Source: Takakia lepidozioides (lineage: Eukaryota; Plantae; Bryophyta). Taken from it: 64,000 nt of DNA. The number at the start of each line of letters is the position of its first letter. Within the stretch, counting starts at the first letter, position 1. This document shows positions 1-60,385 of the stretch, one piece after another. Under the pieces are notes generated by a model. That model was not told the DNA's origin, did no database searches, and saw only the letters and a list, made by a program, of their open reading frames with translations. Location: the NCBI GenBank assembly GCA_030704615.1, contig CM060732.1:72664001-72728000 (forward strand). The letters run 5' to 3'. The position numbers were made by a program, and so were the translations under genes.

Positions 1-102
1 ACAATTCAAACGAGATTAATTAAGGCATTCCAAACTCTGTTGAACTGAGTGCTTCGGAAGCAATCCTGTTCCTATACTTCTCGAAATCTTCCACATGTCT
101 GG

Positions 103-965
103 AAGGAAATGAAATGGCATTCTATAGCGTCCACATAAAGCTCAAAGAGCTTATGGGACAAGAGGAAGAAATGAAATGAAATGGTGCTTTATAACGTCCA
201 CGGAAAGCTCATAGAGCTTATGGGACAAAATGGAAGAAAACATGAGAGAGGAAACAAAACCAGAGCCAAAAATAAAGCTATTGTTCGACTGATTGTCTAA
301 GGGTGAAGGCCTTGTGCAGGTGAGCTGCCAAGCATTTCTGATCCTCATAGTGGACGACTTCAGTGAGACCGGGCACCCCGGAATAGAAAATTGAATATCC
401 CATGGATCTCATAGTAGAAAGGCTATGCAAACTGGACATAGGCGGTCCTCGGTTGCAGGTTTTCCCATCTGCCAGTCTCTATCCGTAGGTTGTGGGACAT
501 CTCAGGAAGGCCTTGGAATAGAGAATAGTATCTCCCCCAGATCTCATAGTAGGGATGGAATGAAAGAAATTTTCTTCAGTTTCAATCTTCCTTCTGTCAT
601 TTTTTGAAGCAGGGCACAAGCCATCAGCACACTCCAGGTTGTCCCAGCTACCAATCTCTATCCGCAGACTGTGTGAGACCTTCCTAATGCTTAGGAGGGA
701 TGGGGCTATAGTTGCAATTGGGCTGTAAGATTCTATGATCATGGAGGACAATAGGACAGCAGCTTTGTTTTAAGTTTCCAGGTCCGCCTAACATGAAGCT
801 CCTGCATAAGGAGTTTGTTGCGATTGTGTTGGATTCCAAGCCTTCGCATACTTTGTAGCAGTAGGGAAGCACAGACAGTCCTTTTCCCTCACAGTAGTTG
901 GAGACCCGAGAATAACATGTGGTCTTGAAACCAGCGTTCTCGAGTCTCATAGAGGTTGCCAGGGC
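103..965 (-). mobile_element. LINE-A 3' fragments (stacked, 5'-truncated), (TTTCA)n tails
   Basis: gaaatgaaatgg tails at about 106 and 167; degenerate SH.LRIE.G.W..L..C..C motif on the minus strand. Confidence 0.8.
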
Positions 966-1407
966 TCGGACTGCAATTCAGACAACATCAACGACGCCTG
1001 AAGACATGTGCAGCTGTCCGAGCTCCTCTAAGACAACCTAGCTAGAGTATATGCATTTCTGATTGAGTACCAATCAATGTGCATCTAGTATGTACACATC
1101 TGCTAAACCACACCACTGCTGGTTTGTAAACTTAACGGTTACCCTTGATTAGAGACTGGGTCTCAGCATAACAGGGCTCAGGAAGGCTTCAATTGATGTC
1201 TCTGCAAGTTTCGGCTGCCTATCCAATAGTCATTATGGATATATAACTTGTTCAACGCACTACTCTATTTCCACCCATAGGAAATAGTAAGAGAAGATCG
1301 TTATAAAGAGAAGATCTTTCCAGACAACACAGTCTTTGCCATTTGGGTCAAGGCCCAGCAACCAGCAGAAGTGAGCAAATGAGTTGCCGCTGGAAAGTGC
1401 CACCCAC

Positions 1408-1735
1408 CTTCAAGAGTTGGACGGGAACTGATTGTGGGGGTCTAATTTGTCTACTGGCCTGGAGCTGCCAAGGGGACCTGAAGGCCTGGATCTGCCGTTT
1501 GTCAATTGCTGCAACTGCATCTTCCAGAAATACATTTTGTTGGTTACGAAGGTTCTCCAGGATAGCTGTGATGTACATGCCTTGGTCACGGGGTTCCACC
1601 AGGCACATAGCCAGTGGACAGTTCCCATTCATAGATGGAATGGGCTGCTTGAACTCGTGGCACTCGTACCCTCTCACATTGCCCCGCAATAGGTTCCATG
1701 ACTCTGCAAAGTCGTCGAAGAGTGTCTGCAGCTCC
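1408..1735 (-). CDS. RNF213-like exon 19 (C-terminal region)
   Basis: [11 protein letters not shown]...PLAMCL....G.YI.AIL..L...QN.FL; donor AAG|GTGGGT. Confidence 0.8.
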
Positions 1736-3848
1736 CTTCAGGCATCCACCACTCAACAGCAAATAAATAAGTAGCTGCATGTATCATGGCATTTGAACTT
1801 TCTCTACCCAATCTCACAACAAAGCTCCACTTCTATCGAGAGACATTCTTGGTGCTCGGCGACAATAGAATCTTGAGACCAAATTACCTTTCAGCATCCT
1901 TATCTCCTTCCCTCCTGAGGGCATTGGGGCGGTTCAGGGTGGGTTCCCACAACCTACGGATAGAGACTGGCAGATGGGAAAACCTGCAACGGGAGGACCG
2001 CCTATGTCCAGCTTGCATAGGGTGCAGCCAGGAAATCGAAACTGGAGAACACTTCTTCTACTGCCCTCTATACTACGAGATCCGTGGGAGATTCCACTGT
2101 TTATTCAGTGGAACCCAAACTCTCACTGATGTCTTCCACTATGAGGATAAAAAATGCTTGGCAGCCTACCTGCACGAGGCCTTCACCCTTCGACATTCGC
2201 TAGAACATTAATTGTGGTTTCTGGAATTGTTCCTCTCTCATGTTTCCATTTTGTCCCATAAGCTATGAGCTTTCCGCGGACGTTATAAAGTACCATTTCA
2301 TTTCATTTCTACAGTAAAGAACTCTCTTCTGGCTGCACCATGTGCATACCCCTACAAAGATATTATGTCCACTGGAGGGCCATAGAACCACTGTTCGAAA
2401 TGAGATGAAATGAAATGGTACTTCATAACGTCCGTGGGAAGCTCAAAGTACTCATGCCCAACAATTTACAATCTCATTGCAGAGAACTGGGTGGATGGAA
2501 GAACTGGTACCATGCGAGAAAACACTGTTGATTCAGCTAACAACAGATCATCATCCTCATGGGTATAAAGGAAGAATTCCATAGATAACTGTAGAGGCTA
2601 GATTTGTCGATTGTGAGAGCACTTACTTGTTTCCTCTCAAAAACTCTTCTATGGTTGTTGATGCTGCTGCTGCACGTGTGATTTTGTAGCAGAGTTTTCC
2701 ACTAACAGTGTTACAGAAACGAACAAGGGGCATCAGGTGCTGTATGTTATTCAGGATCTCTTTGTGCTGGAAGAACACTTCTATGATGGGGCTGGCCTCA
2801 ATCCTTTGAGGGTCCTGCATGTACAAAGCCTTAAAGTTTTCAAGAGATGGGCTGATTGTAATACGCAGAAGAGCTCCCATTGCAGTGGGAAATGGTGACA
2901 CCACCCTCTCTTTCAAGGAATCTGCTAGCAAATTGATTCCCTGTTGCTGCTTCAAATATGTGGCTGAAGTTTGATGGACATTTTCAAATGTATGAAGCAT
3001 ATTCTGAAATCCCTTCTCCCAGCTGTCCCTTGCTACAGCGGTGACTAGGGCACCAGTGTGGGGAATAGTAGTCAGTGACGCTACAATACTGTGAATATAA
3101 TGGCATGTAACCTCATGGCTGCAGGAGAGGAGATCGTCCAGTTTGCTCAAATCTTCCTCAATTACTTTCTGTAGCTCATCGGTGATGCAGGAAGCATCCA
3201 CAGGAAGCCCCATTACTTTAGCCAGGTTGCCAGCTCTTTGCCCCATATTAACACCAATCAACAGACAGTAGTGCACTATCAGGCGGAGAGCTCGGTAGCA
3301 TCTCAATTCAAGATGGCGGACTGAATATAAGACATCTGATCGGGCAATGTTGTCAATTATGAAACCTGCACAATGTTCTCCAGGATGAATATCAGTACTC
3401 AGAAAAAAATTCTCGTCTTCAGTCCATGTCATTGTTTCTGATGTCTGATGGATGTTTCTTTCTCGCCTATCCAGGTTGCACAGGGCGCAACCAGGAAATT
3501 GAAACTGAAGAACACTTCTCTATTGCCCTCTATACTATGAGATCCGTGGGAGATTCCACTGTCTATTCCGTGGAACCCAATCTCTCACTGAAGTCTTTCA
3601 CTATGAAGATCAGAAATGCTTGGCAGCTTACCTGCACGAGGCACTCACCCTTAGACAATCACTCGAACAATAGTTTTTATCTCTGGCTCGGGGGGGGGGG
3701 GGGTTGTTTCCTCTCTCATGTTTTCTTCCATTTTGTCCCATAAGCTCTATGAGCTTGCCGCGGACGTTATAAAGCACCATTTCATTTCATTTCTTTGAGT
3801 TATAAAGTACCATTTCATTTCATTTCATTTCCCTTCGGAGACATCTGA

Positions 3849-3880
<32 letters not shown>

Positions 3881-6800
3881 GGCCCCTACGCAAGGATGAC
3901 ACGCACAAATCGAGAAATGGACCAAATTGTTTTAGACATCACATCCAAACAGGATCGCAACCGATTAGAAGGGAGCTTATGGAACTACATGTCAGGAGAA
4001 CTTGGAAGCTACCCAATCTCACGACAAAGCTCCATTTCTATCTAGAGACATTCTTGGTTCTCCGGGATGATAGAATCTTGAGGCCCAATTACCTTTCGGC
4101 ATCTTTATCTCCTTCCCTCCTGAGAGCATTGGGCCGGTTCAGGGTGGGCTCCCACAACCTATGGATAGAGACTGGCAGATGGGAAAGCCTGCAACGGGAG
4201 GACCGCCTATGTCCAGCTTGCACAGGGCGCAACAGGGAAATTGAAACTGAAGAACACTTCTTCTATTGCCCTCTATACTACGAGATCCCTGGGAGATTCT
4301 CACTGAAGTCTTCCACTATGAGGATCAGAAATGCTTGGCAGCTTACATGCACGAGGCCTTCACCCTTAGACAATCACTCGAGCAATAGTTATTATTCTTG
4401 GCTCTGGTTTTGTTTCCTCTCTCGTGTTTTCTTCCATTTTATCCCTCTATGAGCTTTCTGCGGACGTTATAAAGCACCATTTCATCTCATTTCTGTTTCT
4501 TGTTTGCCTTTTGTCCAATAAGCTCTTCGAACTTTCTGCGGACGCAGTCATCTTTCCTCCAAGCAATGCTTGGAGCTAGCGGCACAACTCCATCACACAT
4601 TCTATGTGCAGAGATTGCATGCATGCCACATCAAACCAAGGCCAGCTTCCGGCTTACAATCTTTTTTAAGAGGATACAAGCCCTAAAACCCAAAGGGCAC
4701 ACAGCAGGAGCCCTCACAACATCTATCAAGCTCAGATCAGCAGGTTTCAAGCCCTCCTGGTATAATTGGGTGGGCAGCTTTTGGAGCGCAATAGACTCTC
4801 TGTTGCTTCCCTATTGCCACAAAATACAGAAAGGGTGGAAATCACGTGTAAACAGGATCGCAACCGACTCATTAGAAGAGAACTTATGGAACTTCATGTC
4901 AGGAGCATGGAAGCCAGCCACTCCTACAACAAAACTCCATTTATATCAGGAGACATTCTTAGTTCTCCTTGACAATAGAATCTTGCGGCCTAATTACCTA
5001 TCTGCAACATTATCTCCCTCTCTTCTGAGGGCATTGGGGCAGGTGGGCTCCTACAATTTACGGATAGATTGTACTCATAAGACGTTGTTTGCCGTAGCCT
5101 TGTGGCCATTGACCCCGCGCCCAGTTTGAGCGGGAACAAAAGGACCCTACAATTTACGGATAGAGACTGGTAGGTGGGAAAACCTGCAATGGCCAAACCA
5201 CCTATGCCCAGCATGCACCTGGCGAAACCGGGACATTGAAACTGAAGAATACTTCTTTTACTGCCCTCCCTACTATGAGATCCGTGGGAGATTCAACTGT
5301 CTATTCCGCGAACACCAATCTATCTCAGAAGTCTTCCATTATGAGGATCAGAAATGCTTGGTCACTTACCTGCATGAAGCTTTGACTTGTTTCCTTTTGT
5401 CCTGTAAGCTCTTTGAGGTTTTTGCGGACGTTGTAAAGTACCATTTCATTTCATTTTTTGCAAATCCCTTGAGCAGTAGTTGCTTTTGGGCTGTTTTTTG
5501 GCTCTGGTTTTGTTTCCTCTCTCTCCCTTAGACAATCACTCGAGCAATAGTTTTATTTTTGGCTCTGCCTTTGTTTCCTCTCTCATGTTTTCTTCCCATT
5601 TGTCCCATAAGCTCTATGAGCTTTTGGACGTTATAAAGTACCATTCATTTCATTTCTTTCATTTTTTCTGGGAAATGCTTGACAGTGTCTTTCACCAGGC
5701 ACTCCTCAAAGGGAAATGCAATGAAATGGTGCTTTATAACGTCCGTGGAAAGCTCATTAAGGGACAAAATGGAAGAAAACATGAGAAATGAAATGAAATG
5801 GTGCTTTATAATGTCCGCGGAAAGCTCGTAGAGCTTATGGGACAGAATGGAAGAAAACATGAGAGAGGAACAAATCCAGAAACCACAATTAATGTTCTAG
5901 CGATTGTCTAAGGGTGAAGGCCTCGTGTAGGTAGGCTGCCAAGCATTTTTGATCCTCATAGTGAAAGACATCAGTGAGAGTTTGGGTTCCACTGAATAAA
6001 CAGTGGAATCTCCCACGGATCTCGTAGTATAGAGGGCAGTAGAAGAAGAAGTGTTCTTCAGAGAGGGAAAAAGAAAAGAAATGAAATGGAACCTGATAAC
6101 GTCAGCGAAATAAAAAAGAAAAAGAAAGAAAGAGGCTCAAAGAGCTTATGGGACAGAAGAAAGTAGGATACCAAGAAATGAAAGGGTACTTTATAACGTC
6201 CGCGGAAAGCTCGAAAGTGGGTCCTAAAACAAGCAGCCCAAAAACTAGGATTCAACTTCGAGAGATCCTCTAAGAGAGAGTCTAATTTAGATATCCGGTT
6301 TAGGTCTCAAGCCTAGAGACTCGAACTTTCATGCCTTCATTGCGCTTTTTGGTTGCATCAGGTTATTCCATCTACCAGTCGCTGACGTGATCCCATCCTG
6401 AATCTTCCAAATGGCCATTAAAGAAATGCAGCATGGTGCAAACAAGAGAAATGAAATGAAATGGTACTTCATAACAAGAGAGAGAAGGGGTGAGGGCAGG
6501 GGTGATTACCCTTCTCGATGTAGGTAGCTGGTAACAAGGTGTTGCCACTGGCAAGCCCGTGATGTGTCCCACCAATAGGCCCTTTGCAGTCAGGACACTG
6601 TCCTGCTTGGGCGGGTAGGGTGCACTCTCCAATCACGTACACATGACCGCACTTGCATTTGTATTCACCAATCTTTCGACCTCGTGCAAGAGTATTCTTA
6701 AAAGCAGTCAGAGGGTTGTCAGGGGCCACCAGGACAAATGCTTCAAACAGGTGAGCTGCATCCAGGGCCATGTAACCCTACATGCATCAAGACAATGCAC

Positions 6801-9800
6801 TTGCTTAGCAACTTACCAATTCACATTAAGGCTGAAAATACTGCCTTCCTTGCCAAAACCTTTAGACAAGGATAAAACATCCCAAGAAAATGAGCAATTC
6901 GACTGCACACCATTGTTGGGGGGGGGGGTTTAACGGATGTCGAATTATCATCGGCTCAGCCCACCTGCATAATCTGCAGATGACCTTCATCCCTGGCATG
7001 GGCAACCAAAGTAATCCATAGGTGTACTAGTATCAACAGTGGAACCAGACCTGTAGTGGTGAATTGCTCGGTAAAGATGTCACCACTAACAGCACATGGG
7101 CAGAGATTGATTTGAACCACAAGTCCGGGGTCCGCATACTGGGACTTAGCCGCATAAGGCCTGTAGAGCCAGAGTTAGTGTCTAAGAGAAATTGAATGGC
7201 TTTCCTCCACTTTTGATGCCATTGATACAAATTACTGTTATTTCTCAACCATTCGGCTGCATGTCTCTCTCCATGAGTGAGCTCCCTGGCAGCCTGGACG
7301 AGGTACAGTTTAGATGCCACCGCAGCCGTCATAGGTCCTTGCACTGCTGGGTCAGTTTTAGCGATGGAAGTTTTGATGTTATCCTGTTGGCCACAGGTCA
7401 GGCTCCATAGTAATTCACATGCCTTGTGAAAGCTGGAAGATGAGGACCAAAAGGGGTCAAATCCAAGGGGGTTACTGATTGCTTGCAGAAGTTCCCACTT
7501 TAGCATTAAGGCATATAAACCCAGGGTGTTATGCCTCCCACACTCGAGGGACAAGAGGAGGATGTCCTGCAGTGAAAGCCCGCATCGATTGTGCAGCACC
7601 TTCAGCAAATACTGTTTCAAAGCTGACACCATGTGAGAATTTTTTGAGAACAACTTTGTCAGGCAAGAGGCTACTGCAGAAGCAAAATCCGGATGCAGCA
7701 ACCCGGGCCTTTTCTCATGCACACCTACCAACTCCTCTGCAATAGAATCCAAGATGGCCCGTAAGAGAGCAACAGAGCACACAGCATGGAGGGACAAGGG
7801 CTGGTCGGTTTTCAGCTCGTCTGTAGCTGAAACTAAACACCTCCTGAAAGAGTTATAATCCCATCCTCTGGTGTCTTTCCCTGACAGTAAGCCAGGTCTG
7901 ATGGAGGGTCCCAGTGTCTCATAGATTGAATCGCAAAGAAGGACGAATGCTTTATGGTGTTCACTATCCCACAATTGCTCAGTCACAAACATGCCACCCC
8001 TTGCCTTACTGATATAGAAGACTCGCATATACTGGGGACATACTGTCTCCGAGTCCACAGCAATAGGAAATATGCTTGCATCTAGAAGGCGCAACATAAT
8101 GCTCCTCATCACACATGTTGGGTTATGGCACTGAAAGAGGAAGTTTGCAATTGTGGTGAGGCCATTGACCAATAAATTGCAGCTCAGGCATTTTTCGAAC
8201 AGAGATGCGAGGAAACGGAACCAAAACTCTCGTCCTGCATCCATGAGGAGGTTCAGATCAGGTACAAAGCTCAACACCTCCTCAAGTAATTCCTCGGGTT
8301 TGAAAATCATGCCCCTCATTCTAAACCATTGTGCAAGGTCCTCCAGAACATCTCTGTTCCCCAACAGAGGGGGCATGACCAGGATAGCCAAATCCCGCAA
8401 TACCTCCAACATAAGCATAGTTGACTGGCGGTTTGAGCTTCCTAGAGGCCATGCCAACTTGATGAGGAGGTTCAGCTCTTGCAGCCAATTACTGATGCCG
8501 CCCACTTGATCAATCATCTCCCTTGTGGGCAGCATTGCTAAGCAGCAATTGGAAACTAGGCTCTCATCAAACTGCACAGTTGGAGCTTTATTGACCTTGA
8601 GTTTGTTTAGTTCTAGTGAAATGTGGTGTTCTGGTAGACACAACCCTGCCAGTCGAGTCTGAGCTTCGAGTTTTTCTCCTTTCTCCCACACAAGCACATG
8701 CAGGTCAGAGGCACACATGACCGCTCCACCCATGTTTTCTCTCAATACCCATTCAAATGTCTTAGCTTCTTGCTCCTTCCTTTCATCAGACCTATACACC
8801 GAATATATTTTTGTGAAGTCAGTGACATATTCCTCAAGATGTGACTCAATACAAGGGACAATTGGGCCCAATGATGCATACAGTGCAGCAGAAATATCCT
8901 TGAATATTTTCACAGAAAGCCGTGGGTTGTTGCTTTGGCACTCTGCTTCCCTCTTTCCCTGACTTTTTGCAAGTTCATTCAAATAAAGGTCCCGAAATTT
9001 GGTATCCACATGTCGGGCATATAGGGAACTGAACGGAAGGAGAAGATGAAGCGGACCCATGATCTGGTAACCCTCTGGGTGCTGCGGTGTTGGCACATTG
9101 TCTAGGCACATTATCCCTGGGTTCAAAACAACCTCTTCCCAGACGTGTTTTTTTGCAGAGTCCATGGTGAAGTATGGTCCAAGTGCTGATGCCTTCTCCA
9201 GAACATAGATCAACCTGGCTATAGGCTCTCGAAGTTGCTCTTCTATGTATTGTAAGAAAGCATCATGAATTCTTGAAGAAAGAGAGAGCCGAGCTCGATT
9301 GCATGCCACTGAAGCTTGCCACAAAACCTCCTTGTTCACGGAGAGCCACATCACAGCCCGCTGTTTAAAACACCTCCATAAGTTTCGATCTGTGCAGATT
9401 TGTTGCACCATTTCTTGGCAGTACACTGCTGAGTTTTCTCTGCTAGGGTATTTGATGCATAGAAAACTCCAGATCAGCACTTTCTCCATCATCTTCTCAA
9501 AAGGGATGGTCTCAGATTCCACCAATTCTGCTATGCTGTGGTCTAAGAATTCCCTGCCAAGGAAGAGATTCAGGTTAGTGGATAGTATGAGTTAGAGAGC
9601 TTGCACTGCTGCAAGGACATTTAGGTAGTTTCAACACAGTTTAGACCTTTCCCTCCAGATACCACTTCACAATGATGATAGATGCACCAAAGTTCCATTT
9701 CAATTTCATGCACCAAACCAACAGTGACAGCAAATACAGGCCTTAGAATCAGCCTCTTCAGATGACTGGGAATGGCACGTGAATATTTGGGAGGATGAAG

Positions 9801-21800: not shown

Positions 21801-24800
21801 GAGAGGGAGGAAGTGATCTTAAGTGGCAGTGGGGTAGCCAAGAGATCCCGGTCCTCCCTTCCTACACTTACCTGGGCGTTGAGTTTTCCTCCAATTGTAA
21901 TTGGGATGCACATATCCGGAAAGTTGTTCAAACTGGCAAGGGCAAAGCTCTGGGGCTCACTAAATTTTTCCACTGCAGAGGGGTCAACTCTGAGGTTAAG
22001 AAAACCATGCTTTGTCGCGTTATTAGACCTGCCTTGGAGTACGGATCTGCTATATGTGTTTTTAAGTCCAACCAGGCTAAGTCTCTAGAATCCATTCAAG
22101 TGGGGGTGCTTAAGGAGTGTATGTCAGCATGCTCCAAAACAGCCAATGTGGCTGTTCGGGGTGAGTTTGGCATTCCGTCCTTAAGCTCCCGACGAGATGA
22201 ATTCAAGGTCAGATGGTGGGGTCAGCTGCAACATATGCCCAACACCAGATATCCTAAGTTAAACGACTCTATATCTTGGAAACAGGACCGCCCTGTCAAA
22301 GAGGCTAAGTCCTGGCAGAAGAGAGTAGAAGAGATCCTCAAGGACCTGGACCTGGATCCGCAAGTCTTGACCCTGCTGGATAAATCTGATTTAGAGGCTG
22401 TAGTGTCCTCAGCCATTTCTGTTGCCATGAGATTGTCTGATGAAAATGAAGTTAGGCAGAAAACTTCCCTGAACTTGTTTCCAGTCTGTGACATGGGGGA
22501 GGACATCTTGGATGACCTCAAGGGTCTACCCACTCTCGGCACTAGACTGAAATTTAAACTCAGGGAGGAAGCCTACCTTTGAACAGCAAACAGAAGCAGA
22601 GAGGAAAGGGAGAGTGCAATTGCCCATTGTGTGGGCAATCTGAAGACAGTATTCATTTTCTGATACACTGTCCGGGGTTCTCTCACCAAAGAGACGCTCT
22701 CTTCAAATCTATTAAGGGTATTGTGCCTGTACCCCTGTTTACCAACTTTGAAAGTCTCGAGGCTGAGCCAAAAGCCCAGGCCCTCCTGAGGCCTATTTTT
22801 TGGGCAAATCACACACAGCAGATTGATGTTTGTGTGAAGGGATTTCTAGAGGATATCTGGAAAACCCGGATTAATTCTATATATGGAGGTAAGTCTTACT
22901 ACCAACGTCAGCCCCTGACAGAGGTAGGTTCTGTCCCTTTTGTTCCCGCTCAAACTGGGCGCGGGGTCAATGGCCACAAGGCTACGGCAAACAACGTCTT
23001 ATGAGTACAATCTATCCATAAATTGTGGGAGCCCACCCTGAACCTCCCCAAAGCCCTCAGAAGAGAGGGAGATAAAGGTGCAGATAGGTTATTAGGCCGC
23101 AAGATTCTATTATCACAGAGAACTAAGAATGTCTGTCGATAGAAATGGAGTTTTGTTGTAAGAGTGGCTGACTACCATGTTCGCCTAACATGAAGTTCCA
23201 TAAGTTCTCTTCTGATGAGTCTGTTGCGATCCTGTTTGGTCGTGATTTCCACACCTTCCGTATTTTGTGCCCATAGGGAAGCAACAGAGTTCATTGTGCT
23301 CTTAAAAAAAAAAAGAGATGAAATGAAATGGTGCTTTATAACGTCCGCGGAAAGCTCATAGAGCTTATCGGACAAAATGGAAAGAAAAACATGAGAGAAA
23401 ACAGGAAACCAGAGTCAGAGATAAGAACTATTGTGCGAGTGAAAAGAAACAAAGAATTATATATTGTCCAAGAGAGTCTCCAGAGGCCCTGGGACAGTGT
23501 AGAACAAACCAAGAACTACTCCAGGGTACATCAGTTGTTGCCCTAAGCAGTTAAGCCACGAGGGACTTCACATTTCCAAAGTTGAAAGTATCCGCTAAGG
23601 ATTGGGAATCTCTAATAAGCTAGTAATATCTCCTGCGGATCTCTTAGTATGAGTTACAGGAGAAGAAATAGTGGTGCTCTGTTTCCACTTCCTGCGACGT
23701 GCAGACCAGACAGACTGATATACCAATCTTAAGCTGAAAGTTTGAGATCGCAAGTCTACCTACCACATACTAGTTCCTGTTTGTAAAATCCATAAACTGT
23801 GGACCTGTCGTATATATTACCTTGAGAATGCCTTCTGAAGTGGAACTCTCAGAGCCCTGATAAGAGAGCATGTACATCCTTGGTAATTGTTGGAAATAGG
23901 AATCCCTTGATTCCGAGCCTCTCAAATTGCTGCACAATGATAACTGAATCAGCATAAGCCCAAAAATCTAGAGTCTGAACCTCCAATTACTTTCAAGTTA
24001 TTGAACAAGATGGCATTAACCTGTAAATGAGCTGAAGCGCAAGGGTCTTGCCAGATCCAGGCTTCCCGACCACAAATACAGGGATGTAATTCAACATACA
24101 GACAAGCGTAACAAATATGTTCTCCAGCAGTGCTTTGTTCTTGGCTATTCCTGCTGGGATCTCCATGCGGTTCAGCAGGTCCATCTGTTCTCTTCTCAGC
24201 ATCTCACCATACATACGTCCATCGAAGTTCCTGTGACTTGATGCAAAAGACAAGCTTGTTACATAATAGCAGTATCTTACATCTGACAAAAAATACTGGA
24301 GTCTGTGATTTATGGTATTCCACAAAATTTTGCAAGAGCTTCAAGAATTGACTGGAGCAGTCACATCACAGCTCACAGGGGGAAAACTGTGAGTGAAAGA
24401 CCTGGAAATCAGGACATGTACTTTTACTTGGGCTGGAAATTCAAACATTATCAACTAGAAAGACCTCATTCCCAACACATGTACAAAAGAGGGTCTAGTG
24501 ACATCATGTTCCATCTTACCCGTTCTTGATGGGTTTTTCAGCAGTGATGACAGCAGCAAAGGTGTTCCGATACCGTTGTCTCTCTTCCTCAGATGCCAGA
24601 CGAGAATGGTAGCAGTGAGAAAAGGCCAAGACGGCTGCCCTCCTGGTTTTCTGGCCTTGGGAAACCTTTGACTTCTTCTCACCTAGCAGGGGCCTCTTTT
24701 CTATGTCGGCAAGAAACCATCGATACAACAAGATGCAGCGACTTACATCTCGCAAGCTGACACTCGCCTCCCCTTGACATTGCCTCACAAACAATTGAGA

Positions 24801-27800
24801 CTGCACCAGCAACTCAGTAAAGGCTACAAAATGAAGAGCAGTGTCGCTTTCTTGCAACATTGCATGGATGTATGCACGCTCATCAGTGGGATTTAGCAAG
24901 CCAAAATCCCATACATAATCCAGCATCGCCTCTGGAAGCGGGTGAACTCTGTAAGCCAGGTTGAAGTGTCGGGCTTCACTGGAACTCCCAGACTCCCGTG
25001 GTGTGAAACCAGATCGCAGACTCTCTGTGTCATGCAACCTATATGGGTTGCAAGCAGCTAGAACAACCAAACGCTCGTCAAGGAGCCTCCCATCTAAAAG
25101 GCGGTGGCAAATAATTGCATCAAGGAGTCCAAGATGGTCACATGCATTTATTTCATCAAGGAAAGCCCAGACCTGGAACACACACGGTATCAGTGGGCCT
25201 TTCTGTGTGTAAGAAATGAAATGAAATGAAATGAAATGGTACTTTATAGCAAATGAAATGAAATGGTGCTTTATGACGTCCGCGGAAAGCTCATAGAGCT
25301 CATAGCAAAGAGAGCAAAAAACAAAAGCAAGCAAGAAACAAGGGAAAAAGAGCGGACCAAAGCCAAGTCTTTTATATCAAGAGATTCTCTATGTTGGAGA
25401 AGTTATACCACCAGGCATCACTGGTCCTCATAAAGAAAATTTGTCAGGTAGTACAAAGGGGCTGGAGGCTGACCTTCAGTGGTCCTGTAGAAGCTTCAAC
25501 CTCTGCCTCTGCTATGAAAGACCGTATGCTGTCCTCAGTTGATCCAGCATGAAGAGTGACGCTGCGAAATGTCACACTGGAATAGAATGCCAACAATTTG
25601 AGGAGGCTTGTTTTCCCACACCCTGTTTCACCCATAATTATCACAGGAACAGTTGCCCGTACCCTGAGAGATATAAGTGCCATTTTCAAAAAGTTGTCTG
25701 CTGCGAGCACATATTGGGGCTTATAATACGGTGGACGACTCTGTAATATAGGCCACAAATTCTCCCACAACTCGTGGGATGTCATACTTGAGTAGTCTTT
25801 GAGATTTTCATTTCTCTCTGATTTCAACTTTTGGCTTTTAAGAAGCTGTTGAATGGAACAGGGAACAAGCTCCACATGTTTGTAGAGGACTGCAATGGGT
25901 CCATCTACCTGAAAGAATATCATTACATGGTTGCTATCTGACCACCGCAGCATTCCATTCATGCGACCAGTCATGGTCAAGTTTGTGTTTGTCCCGAGAG
26001 CTGGTTGCTGCTGGTCATGGAGCCAAGGCTTAACAGACCTTAATGAGAGATCACGAGCCACTTCCAATAGCGAATCGACCAGACTCGATCGAACTGTTGG
26101 CAGGGCACCCATCCATTGAAGGTTCTCCGGGGTGAAAAAGACACTTTCATTGAAGTTCCGTAACTGTAAGGAAAGAAACTTGATGAACATCTCCAAGATT
26201 GCAAACGACATGGAGTTCCCCTGCATATGTTGGATGAAATGTCTGTCCAAGAGGTCTTGACATCGGCCTGCAGACAGTGTGCCTATGTTTCTTTCATCAC
26301 CCTTGAAGATCAGACATTTCGCATCCAGCTGCCTTTCCTCCATAGCCTGCAAGTAGTGGCAGACAACTTGCACATCACTCTCTGGTTCCTCGCTCACTTG
26401 AAGGGACCCCAGATCCCAGCTTAAGTTCTCCCGTTGGAACCACTGGCAAACTCGGAGGCTCAAAGCCAGTTCATTCCCCAGTGTGTTAGCAAGCTCAATG
26501 GATACATTGGGAGTGTTCAAGAGGAAAACTCCGGCAAGATCTGACTTTAGGCAACCAAGCACCAGGAGTTCAAACAGAAGCACATTCAGAGTCTGTGGAT
26601 TCTGCACTGTGGAGATGTCAAGGTGTAAGAGAGTATTGGGGCACAATTTCAACTGCTTCAGTCGGCGAATGAGAGTGTGCTTGGAAATATTGCCACTAAC
26701 ACAGATTGATTGAACATTATCCTGCAAGCCAATTTAAGTTCAGATTGTCAGTATAGACTCTCCTAGACTTCCAAAACCTCATGAAGTACTGAGCTGGATT
26801 GCTCCACTGGCGGTGGGAATCCAAAGGCTGGAGAAAATGCAATTGAACTCTGTACTTTAGTCCTTTCCCTGCCAATGCCATCTTCCTTAGAGATGATCAA
26901 CTCAGGGCAGTATCAACACGTTGTATTGCTCTTATAATTTTAGCCCACCCACTGTGAGACAAAATGGAATGCGCATGTTGACAGTGCAAGACAACCATGA
27001 TGCTAAGAAAAAGGGAGGCATGTACGTACAGCAGAAGCAGTACAGATTTTCACTGTCTTTCCTAAGCCAGGAAGCTCTGAGGTGACCACCCGCATGTTGG
27101 TACACTCAACAGGTAGCTGCTGGCGAAGCTGATTAAGGTTTGTCGACCCCATATGGCAAACACGCACGTCCATATGCTGGGAAAGTTCATACAAAGGTTG
27201 ACCTGTGGAGCAGCACACTAAAGCCAACATCAATGGCTCACCATCCAGAGAGAAGTTCCCCTCTCTGTTGCTGTTTCTCTCTCCAGCTATCTCCACTTTT
27301 CTTTCTATGACCATCTCTTGAATAGTAGTTAGAAACTGGGCCTGACAATCAAAGCTCAGCTTCTCAATGTAGGCAATGCAGAATAGGGCATTTTTTTCTT
27401 GGGATTTCTCCCTGAAACAGCGCAGTAACAGCAGGTGAAGCTCCTCCCAAGCAGTTGTGAGGCTGCAGAGAAGCACATTTCTTTTGAAATCACGAAGACC
27501 ATGACCCTGCTTGTGAAACAGAGCTACCACAACATCGAGCTCTTGTTGCTGGTCTTCAACCAATGCTAATAGAATGGCCCCAGATCCTCTCCCAGCATTG
27601 TGCCCAAACCAACTGGCTTCATCAATTCCCAGCCCATTGACAACTGCTGGTGCAGCACTCTCCTTCACAAAAATACCATCCAGTGAGACCGCAATTGTCT
27701 TCAAGCAAGCTGAGAGGTCAGCTTCCCTGTCCTCCAAGTGCTTCCCAACAAGCATACGGTCCACGAGAGCTGGTAGCTGCAGCTGCTTTGCAATCTCTTG

Positions 27801-30800
27801 GGCTCTGACTAATCTGTCAGCAACATTGACAATGCCAGCCCACTGGAACAATTCCAAGCACATGCTCACCTTTGCTGCATAATCTTCTGATCTTGTGCTA
27901 CCAAGGACCTCGAAAATCAGCCGCAACTCCATGGAGCAGAAATAGTTGAGACAGGGGTGCAACTGTTTGCGGGCCCACCTCAAAGCTACATACCAGTGTT
28001 GAAGTTCAAGTTCTATATCCTTTGCAAGCACCTGCAAGCCCCTCAATCCAGAGACTGTCTTTGCAAATTCAGAGAAGCAGAAATGGCCACAGGCATGAAG
28101 CTCCAAGATAGAACCAACAAGCTGCTCCACCACGTTCACTTGCTCAATGAACTCTTTTGTAGCCTCCTGTGTTGTGTCCAAGTTGGCTGCATCTTGAAAA
28201 CCCCAATCACAAACTCTGTTAATTTGCAGTCAGGCTAGTCGTGTAATCTAACATAAGCTTAATGGGTTTAGCTAACTTCCTTTGGTGGAATTTAAAAAAT
28301 TAAGTCATCTGTGATGAAGCCTGTTAAAATAATCTAGTGTTCCCTTAAATGGCATGTTTGATTGAGCAAAGGAAACATAGTTCAAGAGAAATTATTTGCA
28401 CCTGCTGAAAGAATTTCATAGTTCCTGGTTTGCGCCTTGCACGAGCTCACCACTAACCGGGCACGACTGCGGAGGTCCTGCAAGTCTGCCATACTGTACA
28501 CACATTTTTCTACAGAGTTTACAGACTGAGGAGTCTCTGACTGGGAGGTTGAGATCGAATCGCCAGGGTCAACACATATCAGCTTGAGGTTGCAAGCCAT
28601 GTTAGCCACAGTGAAATGATACTGCCCACCCTTGAGAATACGCTTCATGTGATCTCTCATCATAAGTCCCCGATTGGCCACAGTTGCCAGAAATTGACGA
28701 ATCCCATCAATCAAATGCCTCAGATCTTCATTCAAATTCTCCTGCAGAAAGGTAATGAGAGGCCCTGATTCTGCGATTTGTTTTAATGCAAGCTCCTCCC
28801 CCTCCCAGAAGAAGGCCAAGATAGCCTTCCCCTCTTGCTTATGAATGTCATGGAACTGCTTCAGTGAGCATCCAGCTTCGCAGTCCCTTCGAATCCTCCC
28901 AATCTTAGTTAGATAATCTCTGCAGCCATCTGTAATATCAAACATTTTGGCAACTTTTGGCAAAGCTTTGGCCAGTTCCTTCTTTTCTTTGATGGCCACC
29001 CATGCTTGTATCAACTCCACAATATTCAAATCTTTGCTGCGAATTAGACTCTTCAAAAAGTGTTGCGGCTTGGAGTCATTCAGACCCAGCAGTTTCCTAG
29101 CCAAATCAAACTCCGTCTCTACATGATTTGAAGCCACCCCCTGCCACAAATAGCAAACTCTTTCCATATTGATTCTTTGTAAGTCACTATTGCACCCCAA
29201 GTAGGTTTTCAGCTCATTTTTGTACATATCAACACATTGGGGCACCAAAATGGAGGCAACCATCGAAAAACTACATGTGCTTCTGTCAGACGCTGGAGGG
29301 GGACTCCCCATGCTAGTGCTAGAAGTGGGACAGTCAGTGTCATCAGAAAGGACACCATGAGAAAAAGTTTTAAGGGAATACTCTAGGAAGACATTCCTAA
29401 ACACTTGAGACTTATGCAGCACTAAAATGGGATCCAAATAAGAGAACAGGGCTTTGTGAGTCTCTGCTGGCCAGTGATCAGATTTGGCCATGGCTTCAGT
29501 CAAAGTCAGGTCCCCCCAGGTGCCCCTCAACTGAGCTAGCCACTCATACCACCCCTCCAACCCTTGGCATGGGATGCCTTTCTCCTTCAAAGAACTGCAA
29601 AGCTCAAGAAGTATGTCACATGCTCTCAACCTCATTCTGTAGACATCAAGTTCAGTCTGGGCACAGTCGAGGGCAATGAGGGCATCTTTCATTCCTCGTA
29701 TGTTGAGAATCTTGTGCCAGGCTCCACTTTGCAGCACGATATCTGCCAACCGTAGAACTATACTTCCTCGCCCTAGCAAGATGCCCAGTTTTCTAGATGC
29801 AGTTTCCAGTTTCATATATAACTGGTGCTGTTGGATGGAGAGAGCGCAGTTTTCTATTTGCAAGAGGCATGTTGCAAATTTTGAATCTGAGATGGTTTCA
29901 ATTGGTTTTTGTTCCAGAAGGTCTTGCAAGACATTTTTGGATGTTGTGTCAATTGCATCCAAGAGAGCTCGACAAAGGTCTTCCTGCATCCTGTCCACCA
30001 GAAACATACAAGTTAAAGAAAAAATTTTAGACAGACCAAACAATTTATTTCTAGCAGGTGTGCTGTACTTCCCAACTTCTATCACCTGCATTACATTTTC
30101 AGAACCTATGGGTAGATCACCAACCGCGATACTTACTGTTCTCCAATGGTCAGAGTCCCCTGCTGAGTTTGACTGCAAATGCTTTGCAAGACCTGCCAAC
30201 CAACTTTATCCAGGTCAGGCAGTGCTGTTGATGCATGCTGAACTTCCTGGTTAATAAAGGCAACGGCGGCCTCCCGGTAGTGCATCTTAATAGAATTGTG
30301 CAAAAGGTGACCAATTTGGTTCGAATCCTTGAGAAATCTTGGCAGGCTCAGACACTGCTGCTGGCTCTGCGATACGGCCAATGAAGTTAGGAAGTCAGCC
30401 ATGTGCCCAGAGGACTCGAGGCCTGCATCGAAGATTTCTGCCACGGCTTGAAAAAAATACAGTGGAGAGAGAACAGGGGACAGCACTCCTTCCATGGGCA
30501 ACTCAGAAGCCAGTCTTTGAGCAACTGCAAGTAGCCAGATCCTCAGGAAATCATGTTTCCTATGCTCCAGACAGTTTTTGCTGGTCTCAGATGGGGCCAA
30601 GGTTGTCACAATCTTTACTATTGCAAGCTTTCCCATTTCCTGAAACTTTGCATTCTGCGTTCTGGCAAGTGTTTGGAGAAGACGAACTTCATTCGACAAC
30701 AGAGGGATCTTAAAAGTGTGGGGGCACAGAATGAAGTTCTCCAGGCCCTTCAGGAAAGGAGAATTCACAGTTCTAAGGTGGCCATCTCGGAGTTCTGGAT

Positions 30801-32414
30801 TTCCTTCCAGTGCCAGAACTTCCAACAAAAGATTTCCAGCATTCTCTCTGAAGCTTTGCGCCAGATATGATGGCATATCGGGTATCGACTTCAATGCTAT
30901 CTCCAGATGTTTCCTTCTCAAAGGGCCTTCCTGCCGGGCCAGCTGGCAGTACCATGCCCGCATTGCTTCTCCCTGTGCTGATGCAATCTCTTGGAAGTTG
31001 AAATCAGATAAAGGGGAATCTCCAGCATTACTCAGCCACAGTCGGAGGGCAGATGCTGCTTGCAAGAAAGATGGGGCAGTGGGTGCTGCCCGCAGGGCCA
31101 CTTTGGCTGCATTTCCTTTGAGCATCTTCGTAGACAGCCTTGCACACTCCATAAGATGCTGGATTGCTTGACTGTAGTCTTTGTTGACTTTTTCTTGCTC
31201 GGCATCACTGTGGATGTCAAGACACATAGGATTCCAGCTGTCTAGGAAGCTCCATGAAGGATCCAAGTTACTAAGTATGCTCAAATGATCGATCCACTCG
31301 AAGGAAAAGGGTGAAACATGCTGAACTACAAGTGCAACTCCCTTCTGGAATGTGGTCCGTAATAACTCAGGAACCGACATCTGGCCCCCAGATACCAGCA
31401 TGTATTTCTGTAAAGCTGCCAGGACGTCAACATAAGTACTGAAAAGCCTTTCCCTGCCACATGCTTCAGATGTCCTGAAAAATCCAAGGATGTCAATCCA
31501 TGCAAGGCAAATTAAAGCTGTCTTTCCTCCCTGCAGTGAGTTCATCTGATTCAGGTCACAAGGATTGATTCCCCCTAACTCATGACGAGCCCACTTCTGC
31601 ATGAGCTCCAGAATTCCAACAGGATTCATTGTGATAATGCGTTTGATGTTTCTTGGTCGGTGATGACGATATTCCTGAACACACTCCTCAATGTTCATAG
31701 GGTCAGCAAAATCAACAATTTTTGTCAAAACAGCCAACCACATGTCAACGGGAAGGTTTTCTCCCGCCAATAGATCCCCTTGGGCAGAAACCACATCAAC
31801 CTGCATTCTTGCTCGTCGGATATCTACTGCTCTGTTCACAACAGACATGGATTCCGGTTTCAATTGGTTTTTAATTGAATTGATCGCTTGCGCAACTCTG
31901 TTACCCGAGTTGTTTGCTCCACGCCCTACAGGCACACTGAATTGGTAGGAGATAATACGCAGATGTTGGCCCAGGTCAGTTTGTACTGGGGGTGAACTCC
32001 AGCTGTTGTAAGGAAGCTGAAAATTCTCCAGACTACTGCGCCCAAGGGCTATCTTGTGAATCACTGGTGGTGCAGATCTTTTGCTTCGTGAAGATTCACC
32101 TACAGTCTGCAAACAAGCATCCGGGAATACATGAAGCCAACATAAGGGTACTGAAGTAAAGGTAAACTGTGAAATCGAGGAGGAACAATCACCCGCACTG
32201 TTTAAATATGGAGGTACATCCAGCTAAAACGCATCAGCACGGCTAGTAGCCTCACCTGGTGGAGCTCCGCCGTCACAGCTACCACAGATTGGGGGGCAAC
32301 CAAACAAAACCGGAAAAAATTGGCGTCGAGATCCATTGTAGCAGTACTTTGACCACGGTGTGGTGCACAAATTCCAGGTTGGCCCTCTATTGAATGCACT
32401 CCATCATGTTCCAT
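1408..32414 (-). CDS. RNF213: RNF213/mysterin-like giant AAA+ ATPase / RZ-finger E3 ligase, multi-exon gene (at least 19 exons, about 4,290 aa; 3' end unresolved)
   Basis: Hand-spliced exons (minus strand): 32414-32256, 32106-30137, 29990-28402, 28192-27030, 26721-25474, 25172-24520, 24230-24021, 23929-23821, 17508-17395, 14673-14146, 13565-13414, 12964-12500, 11949-11787, 11201-11088, 10277-9949, 9553-7051, 6777-6510, 3437-2627, 1735-1408. All junctions are GT-AG with consistent phases and no internal stop. RNF213-type motifs appear in order: [154 protein letters not shown], then the RZ finger. The start codon is tentative. Confidence 0.9.
1800..2309 (+). mobile_element. LINE-A 5'-truncated copy (RTE-X-like ORF2 C-terminus with CCHC knuckle)
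   Basis: ORF 1786-2211 [16 protein letters not shown]...CPAC...[11 protein letters not shown]; 3' end ttataaagtaccatttcattcatttc. Confidence 0.9.
2627..3437 (-). CDS. RNF213-like exon 18
   Basis: 269-aa ORF (SVR.L...YRALRLIVH...); acceptor catcag|AA, donor AA|GTAAGT. Confidence 0.82.
3465..3829 (+). mobile_element. LINE-A 3' fragment(s) ending in a (CATTT)n tail
   Basis: Same 3' sequence as 1800-2309; two successive tails at about 3778 and 3811. Confidence 0.85.
3830..3933 (+). pseudogene. U6: U6 snRNA retrocopy (near full length) fused 5' of a LINE-A body
   Basis: TCCCTTCGGAGACATCTGATAAAATTGGAACGATACAGAGAAGATTAGCATGGCCCCTACGCAAGGATGACACGCACAAATCGAGAAATGGACCAAATTGTTTT is plant-type U6 with the ACAGAGA box and AGC triad; upstream sequence is a LINE tail, with no USE/TATA promoter. 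Confidence 0.93.
3934..4493 (+). mobile_element. LINE-A 5'-truncated copy (3' half of the U6-LINE chimera)
   Basis: ORF 3979-4452 with the CCHC motif; tail catttcatctcatttc. Confidence 0.88.
4551..5460 (+). mobile_element. LINE-A 5'-truncated copy interrupted by a LINE-B 3' end
   Basis: ORF 4500-5129 switches into foreign sequence at NLRID; LINE-A resumes after the duplicated target. Confidence 0.85.
5069..5145 (-). mobile_element. 77-bp 5'-truncated LINE-B 3' end with target-site duplication
   Basis: Reverse complement of 22933-23010 (one 1-nt indel); flanked by CCTACAATTTACGGATAGA at 5050-5068 and 5146-5164. Confidence 0.92.
5520..6250. mobile_element. Cluster of short LINE-A 3' ends in both orientations
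   Basis: Plus copy 5520-5655; minus copies with tails at about 5716, 5787, 6078 and 6175. Confidence 0.8.
6510..6777 (-). CDS. RNF213-like exon 17 (RZ-type zinc finger)
   Basis: [35 protein letters not shown] matches the RNF213/ZNFX1 RZ consensus C..GH.Y.IGEC..P.....CP.C...IGG..H. Confidence 0.92.
7051..9553 (-). CDS. RNF213-like exon 16 (E3 back/shell/core region)
   Basis: 830-aa ORF; acceptor ttggcag|G, donor CAG|GTCTGG; no C3HC4 RING pattern seen. Confidence 0.85.
9949..10277 (-). CDS. RNF213-like exon 15
   Basis: [11 protein letters not shown]...KHVMLIIH...[15 protein letters not shown]; donor AG|GTAAGA. Confidence 0.85.
10345..11010 (+). mobile_element. Internally deleted LINE-B ORF2 fragment interrupted by LINE-A
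   Basis: [25 protein letters not shown] matches 21640-21740; FPVCDMGE...[11 protein letters not shown] matches 22475-22560. Confidence 0.85.
10612..10803 (-). mobile_element. LINE-A 3' end nested in LINE-B at a TGATGAAAATGAA site
   Basis: LINE-B gtctgatgaaaatgaagttagg (22435-22456) is split here: gtctgatgaaatgaaatgg...[LINE-A]...tgaaaatgaaaacgaacatgaagttagg. Confidence 0.85.
11088..11201 (-). CDS. RNF213-like exon 14 (not in the ORF track)
   Basis: ttgcag|[24 protein letters not shown]...DFH|GTAAGT; phase 0-0. Confidence 0.75.
11787..11949 (-). CDS. RNF213-like exon 13
   Basis: [16 protein letters not shown]...LPDFLLAN; donor AAT|GTACTC inferred from phase. Confidence 0.7.
12500..12964 (-). 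CDS. RNF213-like exon 12
   Basis: [37 protein letters not shown]. Confidence 0.9.
13414..13565 (-). CDS. RNF213-like exon 11 (not in the ORF track)
   Basis: Translated by hand: [29 protein letters not shown]...[11 protein letters not shown]; acceptor ctccag|, donor |GTAAGT. Confidence 0.85.
14146..14673 (-). CDS. RNF213-like exon 10
   Basis: [46 protein letters not shown]; donor GTAAGT. Confidence 0.9.
14720..17300 (-). mobile_element. Array of LINE-A 3' fragments in intron 9
   Basis: Tails at about 14722, 15178, 15280 and 15812; CCHC ORFs 14835-15179 and 15958-16215; older degenerate copies 16330-17300. Confidence 0.85.
17395..17508 (-). CDS. RNF213-like exon 9 (Walker [12 protein letters not shown])
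   Basis: Acceptor ttgcag|GTG, donor AAG|GTACAT. Confidence 0.9.
18985..19340 (+). repeat. Three tandem units of about 125-140 bp in the LINE-B ORF1 region
   Basis: ga(a/g)gatttggta..ctgaatg.tttacca...caagac...aaatcta.aca.ggggtaa.tgtcccc at about 18986, 19113 and 19254. Confidence 0.8.
19340..22582 (+). CDS. LINE-B ORF2: AP-endonuclease plus reverse transcriptase
   Basis: 1080 aa; APE motifs [24 protein letters not shown]; RT motifs [47 protein letters not shown]. Confidence 0.95.
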   Translation: MQNGWPSRSNHKLPRRQTIHTQRAGLRLATFNFSGLTNQRKQLEVGQVLRTNDIHICAGQETWETSDKLVGDVIGYKWAGKMCTLKAASAKRGQKGVGFFVRDFLFDNCEIINKGLRYEHSIWLKLNLKGGMSTKDLFVGCVYMPTEGTLSADADKAFEDVKLDCASFLAKGQVVLLGDFNARVGKGIHQDDIIGPFGEDELNSNGRRLINCLEELQLLTLNNRTRGDQVQWTREKSQTGERSIVDYIIMDKILFPQCANVLIDRTDIGTSDHFLVWTEIKRCFPTTKRSVKRSIRKWRIEKFHNEEVKAEYVQALQEALPHFVQSLQELQSRSVNARNEVERAVDSWESFVSSVADKIIGRKLIVCGRAVNWWTNEIKLKIAERRALYKECCNLETNSELWARYYQLRKDINQLVRSQKKLYWDKLYSEINSNHHGGNDKKFWLALQRLYKPKNGQQVQALKTTKGAVVTSSVDIVKTFETHYSILGRTSRSNSEGSSAEWRDTVGKTVPMIQNSPDELEYISMAYNAPISSSEIVEAIEHLNGYKAGGPDGIVNELIKHGGDPMIEALVLLFNLIWKTEMIPFRWRQGVIVNLYKKGDREEPGNYRGITLLNAVGKTFCRVISTRLEVDLESRGCFHEGQAGFRRNRGCVDHIFTLSQIIQGRKKEWKPTYVFFLDVKKAYDTVWRDGLWFRLWSCGIKGKMWRVVHNLYAHTKSCVTVKRQKSNFFDIDQGVAQGCILSPLLFNVFINQLLEDVSEGFGLRVGDTTIPALMFADDFAGIGETPTNLQELIDCAKRYFDLWGLEANVSKCAVVAFNDRGEGGSDLKWQWGSQEIPVLPSYTYLGVEFSSNCNWDAHIRKVVQTGKGKALGLTKFFHCRGVNSEVKKTMLCRVIRPALEYGSAICVFKSNQAKSLESIQVGVLKECMSACSKTANVAVRGEFGIPSLSSRRDEFKVRWWGQLQHMPNTRYPKLNDSISWKQDRPVKEAKSWQKRVEEILKDLDLDPQVLTLLDKSDLEAVVSSAISVAMRLSDENEVRQKTSLNLFPVCDMGEDILDDLKGLPTLGTRLKFKLREEAYL
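22579..23004 (+). CDS. LINE-B ORF2 C-terminal CCHC domain (separated by a 1-bp frameshift)
   Basis: [17 protein letters not shown]; the paralogous fragment at about 10930 reads through KLRATSLP, so the frameshift is a lesion or sequencing error. Confidence 0.85.
   Translation: MNSKQKQRGKGECNCPLCGQSEDSIHFLIHCPGFSHQRDALFKSIKGIVPVPLFTNFESLEAEPKAQALLRPIFWANHTQQIDVCVKGFLEDIWKTRINSIYGGKSYYQRQPLTEVGSVPFVPAQTGRGVNGHKATANNVL
23821..23929 (-). CDS. RNF213-like exon 8
   Basis: NLRGSES..YF..LP...[15 protein letters not shown]; donor AAG|GTAATA. Confidence 0.88.
24021..24230 (-). CDS. RNF213-like exon 7 (Walker A GKPGSGKT)
   Basis: [12 protein letters not shown]...[14 protein letters not shown]; phase 2-2 exon. 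Confidence 0.9.
24520..25172 (-). CDS. RNF213-like exon 6 (Walker B FLDEIN, AACNPYR, VSLRDV)
   Basis: Acceptor ttccag|GTC, donor GG|GTAAGA. Confidence 0.9.
25212..25345 (-). mobile_element. Two stacked short LINE-A 3' ends
   Basis: (GAAAT)n tails at about 25213 and 25252 followed by ggt(a/g)ctttat. Confidence 0.8.
25474..26721 (-). CDS. RNF213-like exon 5 (AAA core, Walker A GETGCGKT at 25609-25632)
   Basis: 427-aa ORF with YVL..DN..KM and [14 protein letters not shown]. Confidence 0.9.
27030..28192 (-). CDS. RNF213-like exon 4 (includes LNYF motif and first Walker-A-like LPGLGKT)
   Basis: 392-aa ORF; acceptor ttcaag|AT, donor GCT|GTACGT. Confidence 0.82.
28402..29990 (-). CDS. RNF213-like exon 3
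   Basis: 605-aa ORF; pyrimidine-rich acceptor ...ggacag|G (phase 2); contains [12 protein letters not shown]; donor G|GTGCAA. Confidence 0.82.
30137..32106 (-). CDS. RNF213-like exon 2 (N-terminal arm)
   Basis: 659-aa ORF; acceptor ttgcag|ACT, donor CA|GTAAGT (phase 2). Confidence 0.8.
32256..32414 (-). CDS. RNF213-like exon 1 (putative first coding exon, MEHDG...ELHQ)
   Basis: ATG at 32414; donor CAG|GTGAG at 32256/32255 joins exon 2 in phase 0; upstream acceptor ctgcag| at 32480. Confidence 0.55.
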
Positions 32415-50766: not shown

Positions 50767-50769
50767 TAT

Positions 50770-60106: not shown

Positions 60107-60385
<279 letters not shown>

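Follow-up and report, generated by a model that had tools for sequence, protein, structure and literature searches.

A RING-less RNF213-like gene in the bryophyte Takakia lepidozioides

The window analyzed here is a stretch of 64,000 nucleotides from Takakia lepidozioides (assembly GCA_030704615.1, contig CM060732.1, forward-strand positions 72,664,001 to 72,728,000), and its minus strand carries a gene of 19 exons that runs from 32414 down to 1408 (Table 1). The gene is intact over this in-window part. Spliced from their coordinates, the exons join into 12,825 nt, equal to 4,275 codons with 0 stops, with GT-AG at every junction, which agrees well with the stop-free 19-exon reading frame of about 4,290 codons reported in the initial annotation. 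The four AAA motifs named there are found in the order claimed, at 25632, 25163, 24067 and 17445, and the RZ finger is confirmed by the match of exon 17 to Pfam PF20173 (E 1.9e-17). Residues 38-4275 of the model align in one piece with the Ceratodon protein at 40.6% identity. The C-terminal half of exon 1 is alignable with the N-terminal strands of the fern and moss proteins, and intron 1 is close in position and phase to moss intron 1. The acceptor of exon 4 at 28213 (intron 3) is a weak GAG, and an alternative at 28192 also keeps the frame. Another version of the model, with an extra exon at 11614-11521 and other acceptors for exons 4, 13, 14, 16 and 18, gave stops and was corrected from the homologues. 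The reading frame is still open at the 1408 donor, and with four plant C-termini as queries no convincing match to the terminal ~297 residues of the moss homologue was found in window positions 1-1400; the 3' end of the gene therefore lies outside the window. Short frames near 1027-790 and 98-21, searched with the plant C-termini as candidate terminal exons, were rejected.

Table 1. Exons of the gene, and the LINE reading frame in intron 8, in window coordinates
Feature	Position	Strand	Assignment and basis
Exon 1	32256..32414	-	Inferred start codon and first strands of the N-terminal beta domain
Exon 2	30137..32106	-	Remaining N-terminal beta domain and helical stalk (N-arm); AlphaFold model
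Exon 3	28402..29990	-	Stalk/linker; 32% identity to Ceratodon
Exon 4	27030..28213	-	Linker/AAA1 and AAA2 Walker A (about 27068-27054); homologue alignment
Exon 5	25474..26721	-	AAA2 and AAA3 Walker A (25632); PDB match to RNF213
Exon 6	24520..25172	-	AAA3 Walker B (25163), IR3 insertion, lid; PDB match to RNF213
Exon 7	24021..24230	-	AAA4 Walker A (24067); motif and homologue alignment
Exon 8	23821..23929	-	AAA4; 71-79% identity to moss and fern homologues
LINE ORF2 (endonuclease and reverse transcriptase)	19277..22579	+	Intron 8, antisense to the gene; RVT_1 E 1.6e-33, Exo_endo_phos
Exon 9	17395..17508	-	AAA4 Walker B (17445); motif and homologue alignment
Exon 10	14146..14673	-	AAA4, end of large domain and small domain; PDB match to RNF213
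Exon 11	13414..13565	-	AAA5; homologue alignment, splice positions
Exon 12	12500..12964	-	AAA5 (IR5 region); 65% identity to mosses
Exon 13	11787..11949	-	AAA5/AAA6; homologues, splice positions
Exon 14	11088..11201	-	AAA6; homologues, splice positions
Exon 15	9949..10277	-	AAA6; homologue alignment, splice positions
Exon 16	7051..9553	-	Hinge and E3 back/shell/core scaffold, without RING; fold search
Exon 17	6510..6777	-	RZ finger (6663-6559); PF20173
Exon 18	2627..3365	-	E3 core after the RZ finger; 44% identity to moss
Exon 19	1408..1735	-	E3 core/start of CTD; ends on a donor common to moss and fern

By the exon model the introns total 18.2 kb, of which repeats with further copies in the window cover 7.5 kb; the number of repeat-covered exon bases is 0. 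With the LINE frame in intron 8, which is apparently intact at 1,101 codons, added to these repeats, the earlier estimate of more than 10 kb of intronic transposable elements is a fair one. A short LINE-derived repeat family is dense in introns 5, 8, 9, 12, 14, 17 and 18 and the last intron (96-25342), reaching up to 29 overlapping self-hits in the introns of the gene and nearly none at 26-64 kb. It is very high-copy genome-wide, occurs in RNA-type runs as well, and may favor transcribed introns. LINE-derived repeat pieces (3464-3836 and 3935-4545) flank a full-length U6 snRNA copy in intron 17 (3827-3931, plus strand; Rfam RF00026, 100.5 bits, several substitutions), which looks like a U6 retrocopy or a U6/LINE chimera. 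Beyond the gene, an AT-rich island at 47300-50200 (GC 0.29, CpG o/e 0.83 against about 0.4 elsewhere) contains broken minus-strand frames and a faint, below-cut-off Helitron_like_N match (47925-48197, E 5e-4), and may represent a recent Helitron insertion or foreign DNA. Two frames of PPR gene fragments (60785-61536, plus strand) and a short citrate-synthase exon fragment (60107-60385, plus strand) stand in locally repeated sequence and are probably captured or decayed copies. The window also holds a tandem duplication at 50768-52123, with a unit of about 650-700 bp and 88% identity.

Family searches were run exon by exon, or with homologues as queries. Against the PDB, exon 5 matched RNF213 over 250 residues (E 2.9e-14) and midasin in the P-loop only (E 5e-11), RNF213 was the sole match for exon 6 (E 6e-24) and exon 10 (E 5e-14), and exon 18 gave a weak RNF213 match (E 0.016). 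The moss orthologue used as a query matched RNF213 alone, with an E value of 1e-119. No sequence match in the PDB was obtained for exon 16, and its AlphaFold model (pLDDT 87) is all helical; a Foldseek search with this model returned RNF213 as the nine best matches (best E 1.8e-6, TM by query about 0.4), and VIA superposed exon 16 residues 164-834 on RNF213 3701-4466 with a Z of 7.2 and an rmsd of 15, which is weak on its own. The sequence or predicted fold of the AAA, E3 and RZ parts thus bears out the assignment to RNF213, and not to midasin or dynein, that was made in the initial annotation. There is a negligible chance that a midasin (Rea1) or dynein-type AAA protein has been misread as RNF213: the exon 5 match to midasin is joined by a faint one to the Pfam midasin lid (E 0.074), but the RNF213 score of exon 5 is better and covers a much longer stretch, exons 6, 10 and 17 match RNF213 without any midasin or dynein, and the ring is followed by an RZ finger and an E3 scaffold rather than by a linker, acidic tail and MIDAS domain, so that the exon-wise PDB matches, the E3 fold match, the moss orthologue and the RZ finger exclude both identities.

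The encoded protein is arranged as an N-arm, a six-AAA ring, an E3 scaffold and an RZ finger, the domain order and E3 scaffold fold of human and mouse RNF213 (mysterin; PDB 8S24, 9G08, 6TAX and 7OIK). Exactly three Walker A and two Walker B motifs are present, with complete Walker A/B pairs in AAA3 and AAA4 only. AAA2 has a Walker A-like motif at residue 1622, a predicted ATP site whose lysine is invariant in plant and other homologues. By sequence this is the pattern of the mammalian protein, in which AAA3 and AAA4 alone have complete ATPase motifs and are of the active type, and AAA2 holds ATP (PMC7311170). Alignment to the human RZ finger identifies C3871, C3873, H3875, the catalytic C3882, C3891, C3894 and H3903, and places window residues against human C4505, H4509, C4516, C4525, C4528 and H4537, that is, against the zinc ligands and the pair C4516/H4537, whose catalytic roles have been described in mammals together with the finding that pathogen ubiquitylation there is carried out by the RZ and not by the RING (PMC11549300; bioRxiv 10.1101/2021.05.10.443411). 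The Walker A/B residues of AAA3 and AAA4, the AAA2 lysine and the RZ catalytic Cys and His are invariant in the complete moss and fern homologues. At the position matching H4509 every other plant homologue has Tyr or Phe, and a Cys two residues past the first RZ ligand is invariant across the plant homologues; the zinc site of plants is therefore probably of the form C/H-x-C rather than of the vertebrate form, with the extra Cys replacing the His ligand. The window protein carries both the His and the extra Cys, and so differs from human RNF213, and also from Physcomitrium and Ceratodon, whose RZ begins H-x-C and has Tyr at the His position.

No RING was found in this protein by Pfam match, by Cys/His pattern or in the all-helical exon 16 model, and none of the plant homologues has one. 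The E3 helical scaffold is present between the AAA ring and the RZ finger (by Foldseek, with VIA weak). The N-terminus is the other point of difference from the human and mouse proteins. Its first 1,100 residues cannot be aligned with theirs, and the protein, at about 4,570 residues with the stretch beyond the window included, is smaller than the 5,207 residues of RNF213. In the AlphaFold model of exon 2 (pLDDT 72) five strands are followed by an alpha-solenoid, for which only generic solenoid matches were found in the PDB and the Atlas; an Atlas feature search with the moss N-terminus returned nothing. A beta domain thus precedes the helical stalk at the place equivalent to that of CBM20, but CBM20 itself is not detectable: there is no Pfam match in the plant N-terminus, and hhalign against a CBM20 profile built from homologues gave a probability of 4.6% for a beta domain that is split by intron 1 and modelled in part. 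The CTD, the E2 docking site, falls beyond window position 1 and is present in the moss and fern orthologues. Outside the family, ZNFX1 has an RZ finger ligase domain in common with the window protein, but it is an SF1 RNA helicase with a Miz domain and no AAA ring.

The gene is present in four DNA runs, from which the assembly may have been made, and DNA contigs match the exons without differences. In a probable RNA run, from another sample and another study, the non-repeat contigs are confined to exons 16 and 17; one match stops at 7050 with 26 letters left over, at the predicted donor 7051, and a second stops at 6508 with 49 letters left over, at the predicted donor 6510, so the predicted transcript is probably spliced. 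This RNA evidence for splicing is specific to two donors but indirect, with coverage that is sparse and lies in exons 16 and 17. The single SNP in that sample is synonymous. In the dN/dS comparison that had been suggested with the initial annotation, the AAA core is under purifying selection, with dN of 0.26-0.41 and saturated dS against three relatives. Full-length spliced contigs are on record for Physcomitrium and another plant. We regard it as very improbable that the gene is decaying, or truncated with a broken 3' end, or that the contig is a non-plant contaminant. The introns are heavy in LINEs, the last 297 residues or so lie beyond the window and the RNA coverage is sparse; against this stand 4,275 stop-free codons, purifying selection, the synonymous nature of the sole SNP, DNA contigs identical to the exons, mosses as the closest relatives, and PPR fragments nearby.

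Among the matches listed, the closest named relatives are from Ceratodon, Physcomitrium, Ceratopteris (two genes), Adiantum and Mesotaenium. The orthologues in Physcomitrium patens (LOC112295119; XP_024402110.1, UniRef A0A7I4D517) and Ceratodon purpureus (M758_7G045200) are 41-43% identical to the window protein over about 4,115 aligned residues and are RING-less like it. The genes of Ceratopteris (KP509_01G064300 and KP509_37G042500), Adiantum (GOP47_0011499, GOP47_0028354 and L7F22_054216), Mesotaenium (ME000219S03302) and Mesostigma (Mv22211) belong to the same streptophyte clade, with 34-40% identity and catalytic residues as in the window. In quick trees, with supports given as SH-aLRT, the window gene and one further relative are sister to Physcomitrium/Ceratodon, followed by the ferns and then Mesotaenium (96, 98, 97 and 100), and Mesostigma takes the base of the clade (92) once the long-branch Polarella sequence is removed; the core trees were made without Adiantum GOP47_0028354 (AAA3 missing from the model), partial proteins and human RNF213. 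All 18 introns, and the final donor too, agree in position and phase with those of Ceratodon; for three of these the alignment is poor and the agreement is to within a few residues. With Adiantum, 15 introns are common. The Ceratodon gene contains every window splice position plus two extra introns, and its introns are short and free of the transposable element load. These comparisons indicate that the gene is a streptophyte inheritance, common to model moss and fern and not special to the source genome, and they bear out the plant origin proposed in the initial annotation, with which the PPR fragments near 60785-61536 also agree. The tree position makes the host most likely a bryophyte, either a moss of an early branch or a liverwort.

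The initial annotation had left room for acquisition by horizontal transfer and had called the protein animal-style, and neither proposal was supported. Relatives occur in Cymbomonas, Polarella, chrysophytes, Naegleria, Physarum, Pelomyxa, Paratrimastix, Glomeromycota and invertebrates, that is, in green algae, a dinoflagellate, amoebozoans, a metamonad and fungi as well as animals, so the label of animal-style is unsupported and the family is ancient. A grouping of the window gene with animals is rejected in the AU test (p-AU 9e-8), and the splice positions are all common to moss. Several further counts make it improbable that the gene was transferred, to this lineage or to an early streptophyte, from an animal or from a fungus of the Glomeromycota. 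The gene neither nests in a donor clade nor is absent from the relatives of its host, many of its splice sites are common to fern as well as moss, the best-scoring deep topology holds the Viridiplantae together, homologues extend over many eukaryote supergroups, and one intron is common to plants, a fungus and amphioxus. The points in favor of transfer are the large RNF213-like expansions in Glomeromycota and invertebrates, and the AU test, which rejects neither streptophytes with animals (p-AU 0.069) nor streptophytes with Glomeromycota (0.235). Phylogeny and intron positions uphold streptophyte descent. The shared intron, of phase 2 and at residue 709 (3' of exon 2), occupies one alignment column in moss, fern, Ambispora and Branchiostoma; it fits descent from a very early eukaryote, but a single intron where identity is low is suggestive only. 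On the simplest reading, the gene was present in early eukaryotes and has been lost many times. Taken together, these data suggest that the gene almost certainly belongs to the RNF213 family and came down by vertical descent.

No orthologue from seed plants was seen among the best word-index matches listed or in the streptophyte clade of an exhaustive search, which consists of the named seed-free plants and three sequences without a species label, two of which group with ferns. Marchantia, Selaginella, Sphagnum and Chara were likewise not seen among the matches listed. Absence from seed plants is graded here as likely and no higher because the word-index searches work within length and word limits, and the view of the initial annotation that flowering plants have no described orthologue agrees with these results. 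Our literature search, which left most subscription journals outside its scope, found no study of a plant RNF213, in keeping with that same view, and none that joins RNF213 with Physcomitrium or Physcomitrella. UniRef already lists the orthologues, under the name 'RZ-type domain-containing protein'. The gene is a real member of an established family, RING-less and from a kingdom where it is apparently undescribed. It is apparently single copy in both model mosses and duplicated in ferns. The Adiantum capillus-veneris model GOP47_0028354 lacks the AAA3 Walker A/B stretch, either through a gene-model error or a real deletion.

In human cells RNF213 is a giant enzyme that tags invading bacteria for destruction. 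If the plant protein works as mammalian RNF213 does, AAA2 would hold ATP structurally, and AAA3 and AAA4 would bind and hydrolyse ATP, gating the ligase. An E2 docked on the CTD would hand ubiquitin to C3882 of the RZ finger, and with H3903 as the base the finger would move it to a hydroxyl or amine of the substrate, no RING being needed. From the conserved residues and the mammalian precedent, we judge that the protein is very probably a working ATP-gated RZ ligase. More speculatively, it may polymerise in the cytosol on membranes that are foreign or damaged, such as those of invading microbes, their vacuoles or haustoria-like compartments, where ubiquitylation of non-protein or protein surface ligands would call in selective autophagy; seed-free plants might have retained such cell-autonomous surveillance while seed plants lost it. 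We lean toward a vertically inherited bryophyte orthologue, within an old RNF213 family retained in patches among eukaryotes, that acts as an ATP-gated, RZ-only transthiolating ligase and coats foreign or damaged membranes. Whether its main role would be against invaders we put at about even, with LPS as a plant substrate suggested by analogy. Immune genes tend toward patchy retention, duplication and fast divergence, and the patchy retention of this gene, its fern duplications and its fast-diverging N-terminus (20-30% identity) are as such genes tend to show. Bacteria seldom get into the cytosol of a walled plant cell, which counts against a role toward invaders, as does the undetected CBM20 of the plant N-terminus.

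The same enzyme might instead have a housekeeping function, in which it ubiquitylates not pathogens but lipid droplets or damaged organelles of endosymbiotic origin (mitochondria, plastids), leading to their turnover or autophagy, and this we consider possible but less likely. Mammalian RNF213 coats lipid droplets, and plastid peptidoglycan is kept in mosses and ferns and missing from flowering plants, a distribution that resembles that of the gene. Mammalian RNF213 also acts on damaged mitochondria, ubiquitylating those that are permeabilised (bioRxiv 10.64898/2026.09.21.752888). A single copy in two model mosses, the full-length Physcomitrium transcripts on record and the undetected carbohydrate-binding CBM20 point the same way. 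Repeated loss fits poorly with a housekeeping function, however, given that among the matches listed the gene was unseen in Marchantia, Selaginella, Sphagnum, Chara and seed plants, and the two roles are compatible with each other. On the broadest form of the defence reading, which we regard as doubtful, seed-free plants would possess a cell-autonomous RNF213 defence that coats intracellular invaders, or the host-derived membranes around them, with lipid- or glycan-linked ubiquitin. This defence would date from early eukaryotes, seed plants would have lost it, and the RING-less, RZ-only form would be ancestral. Should the defence reading be true, Physcomitrium, with one apparent copy, would allow a direct test; LOC112295119 in this moss and the genes of Ceratopteris offer tractable knockout models.

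The structural literature treats RNF213 as a vertebrate gene (PMC7311170). An intact and conserved streptophyte clade would place the origin of an ATP-gated machine that ubiquitylates non-protein substrates back in early eukaryotes, and would show the RING to be dispensable in nature. It also bears on what RNF213 senses across such different targets and on which pathways of immunity or organelle control seed plants have lost. Elsewhere in the family, the RNF213-like proteins of Glomeromycota, protists, algae and invertebrates are about 40% identical to the window protein in the AAA core and some of them retain CBM20, and most non-animal members have an RZ of the C-x-C type and no RING. Many invertebrate members differ in this region: in corals and other invertebrates, hundreds of RNF213-like proteins of ~3,900 residues give no RZ match in Pfam, unlike the plant, fungal and protist members, and these expansions may have lost the ligase end or acquired another in its place.
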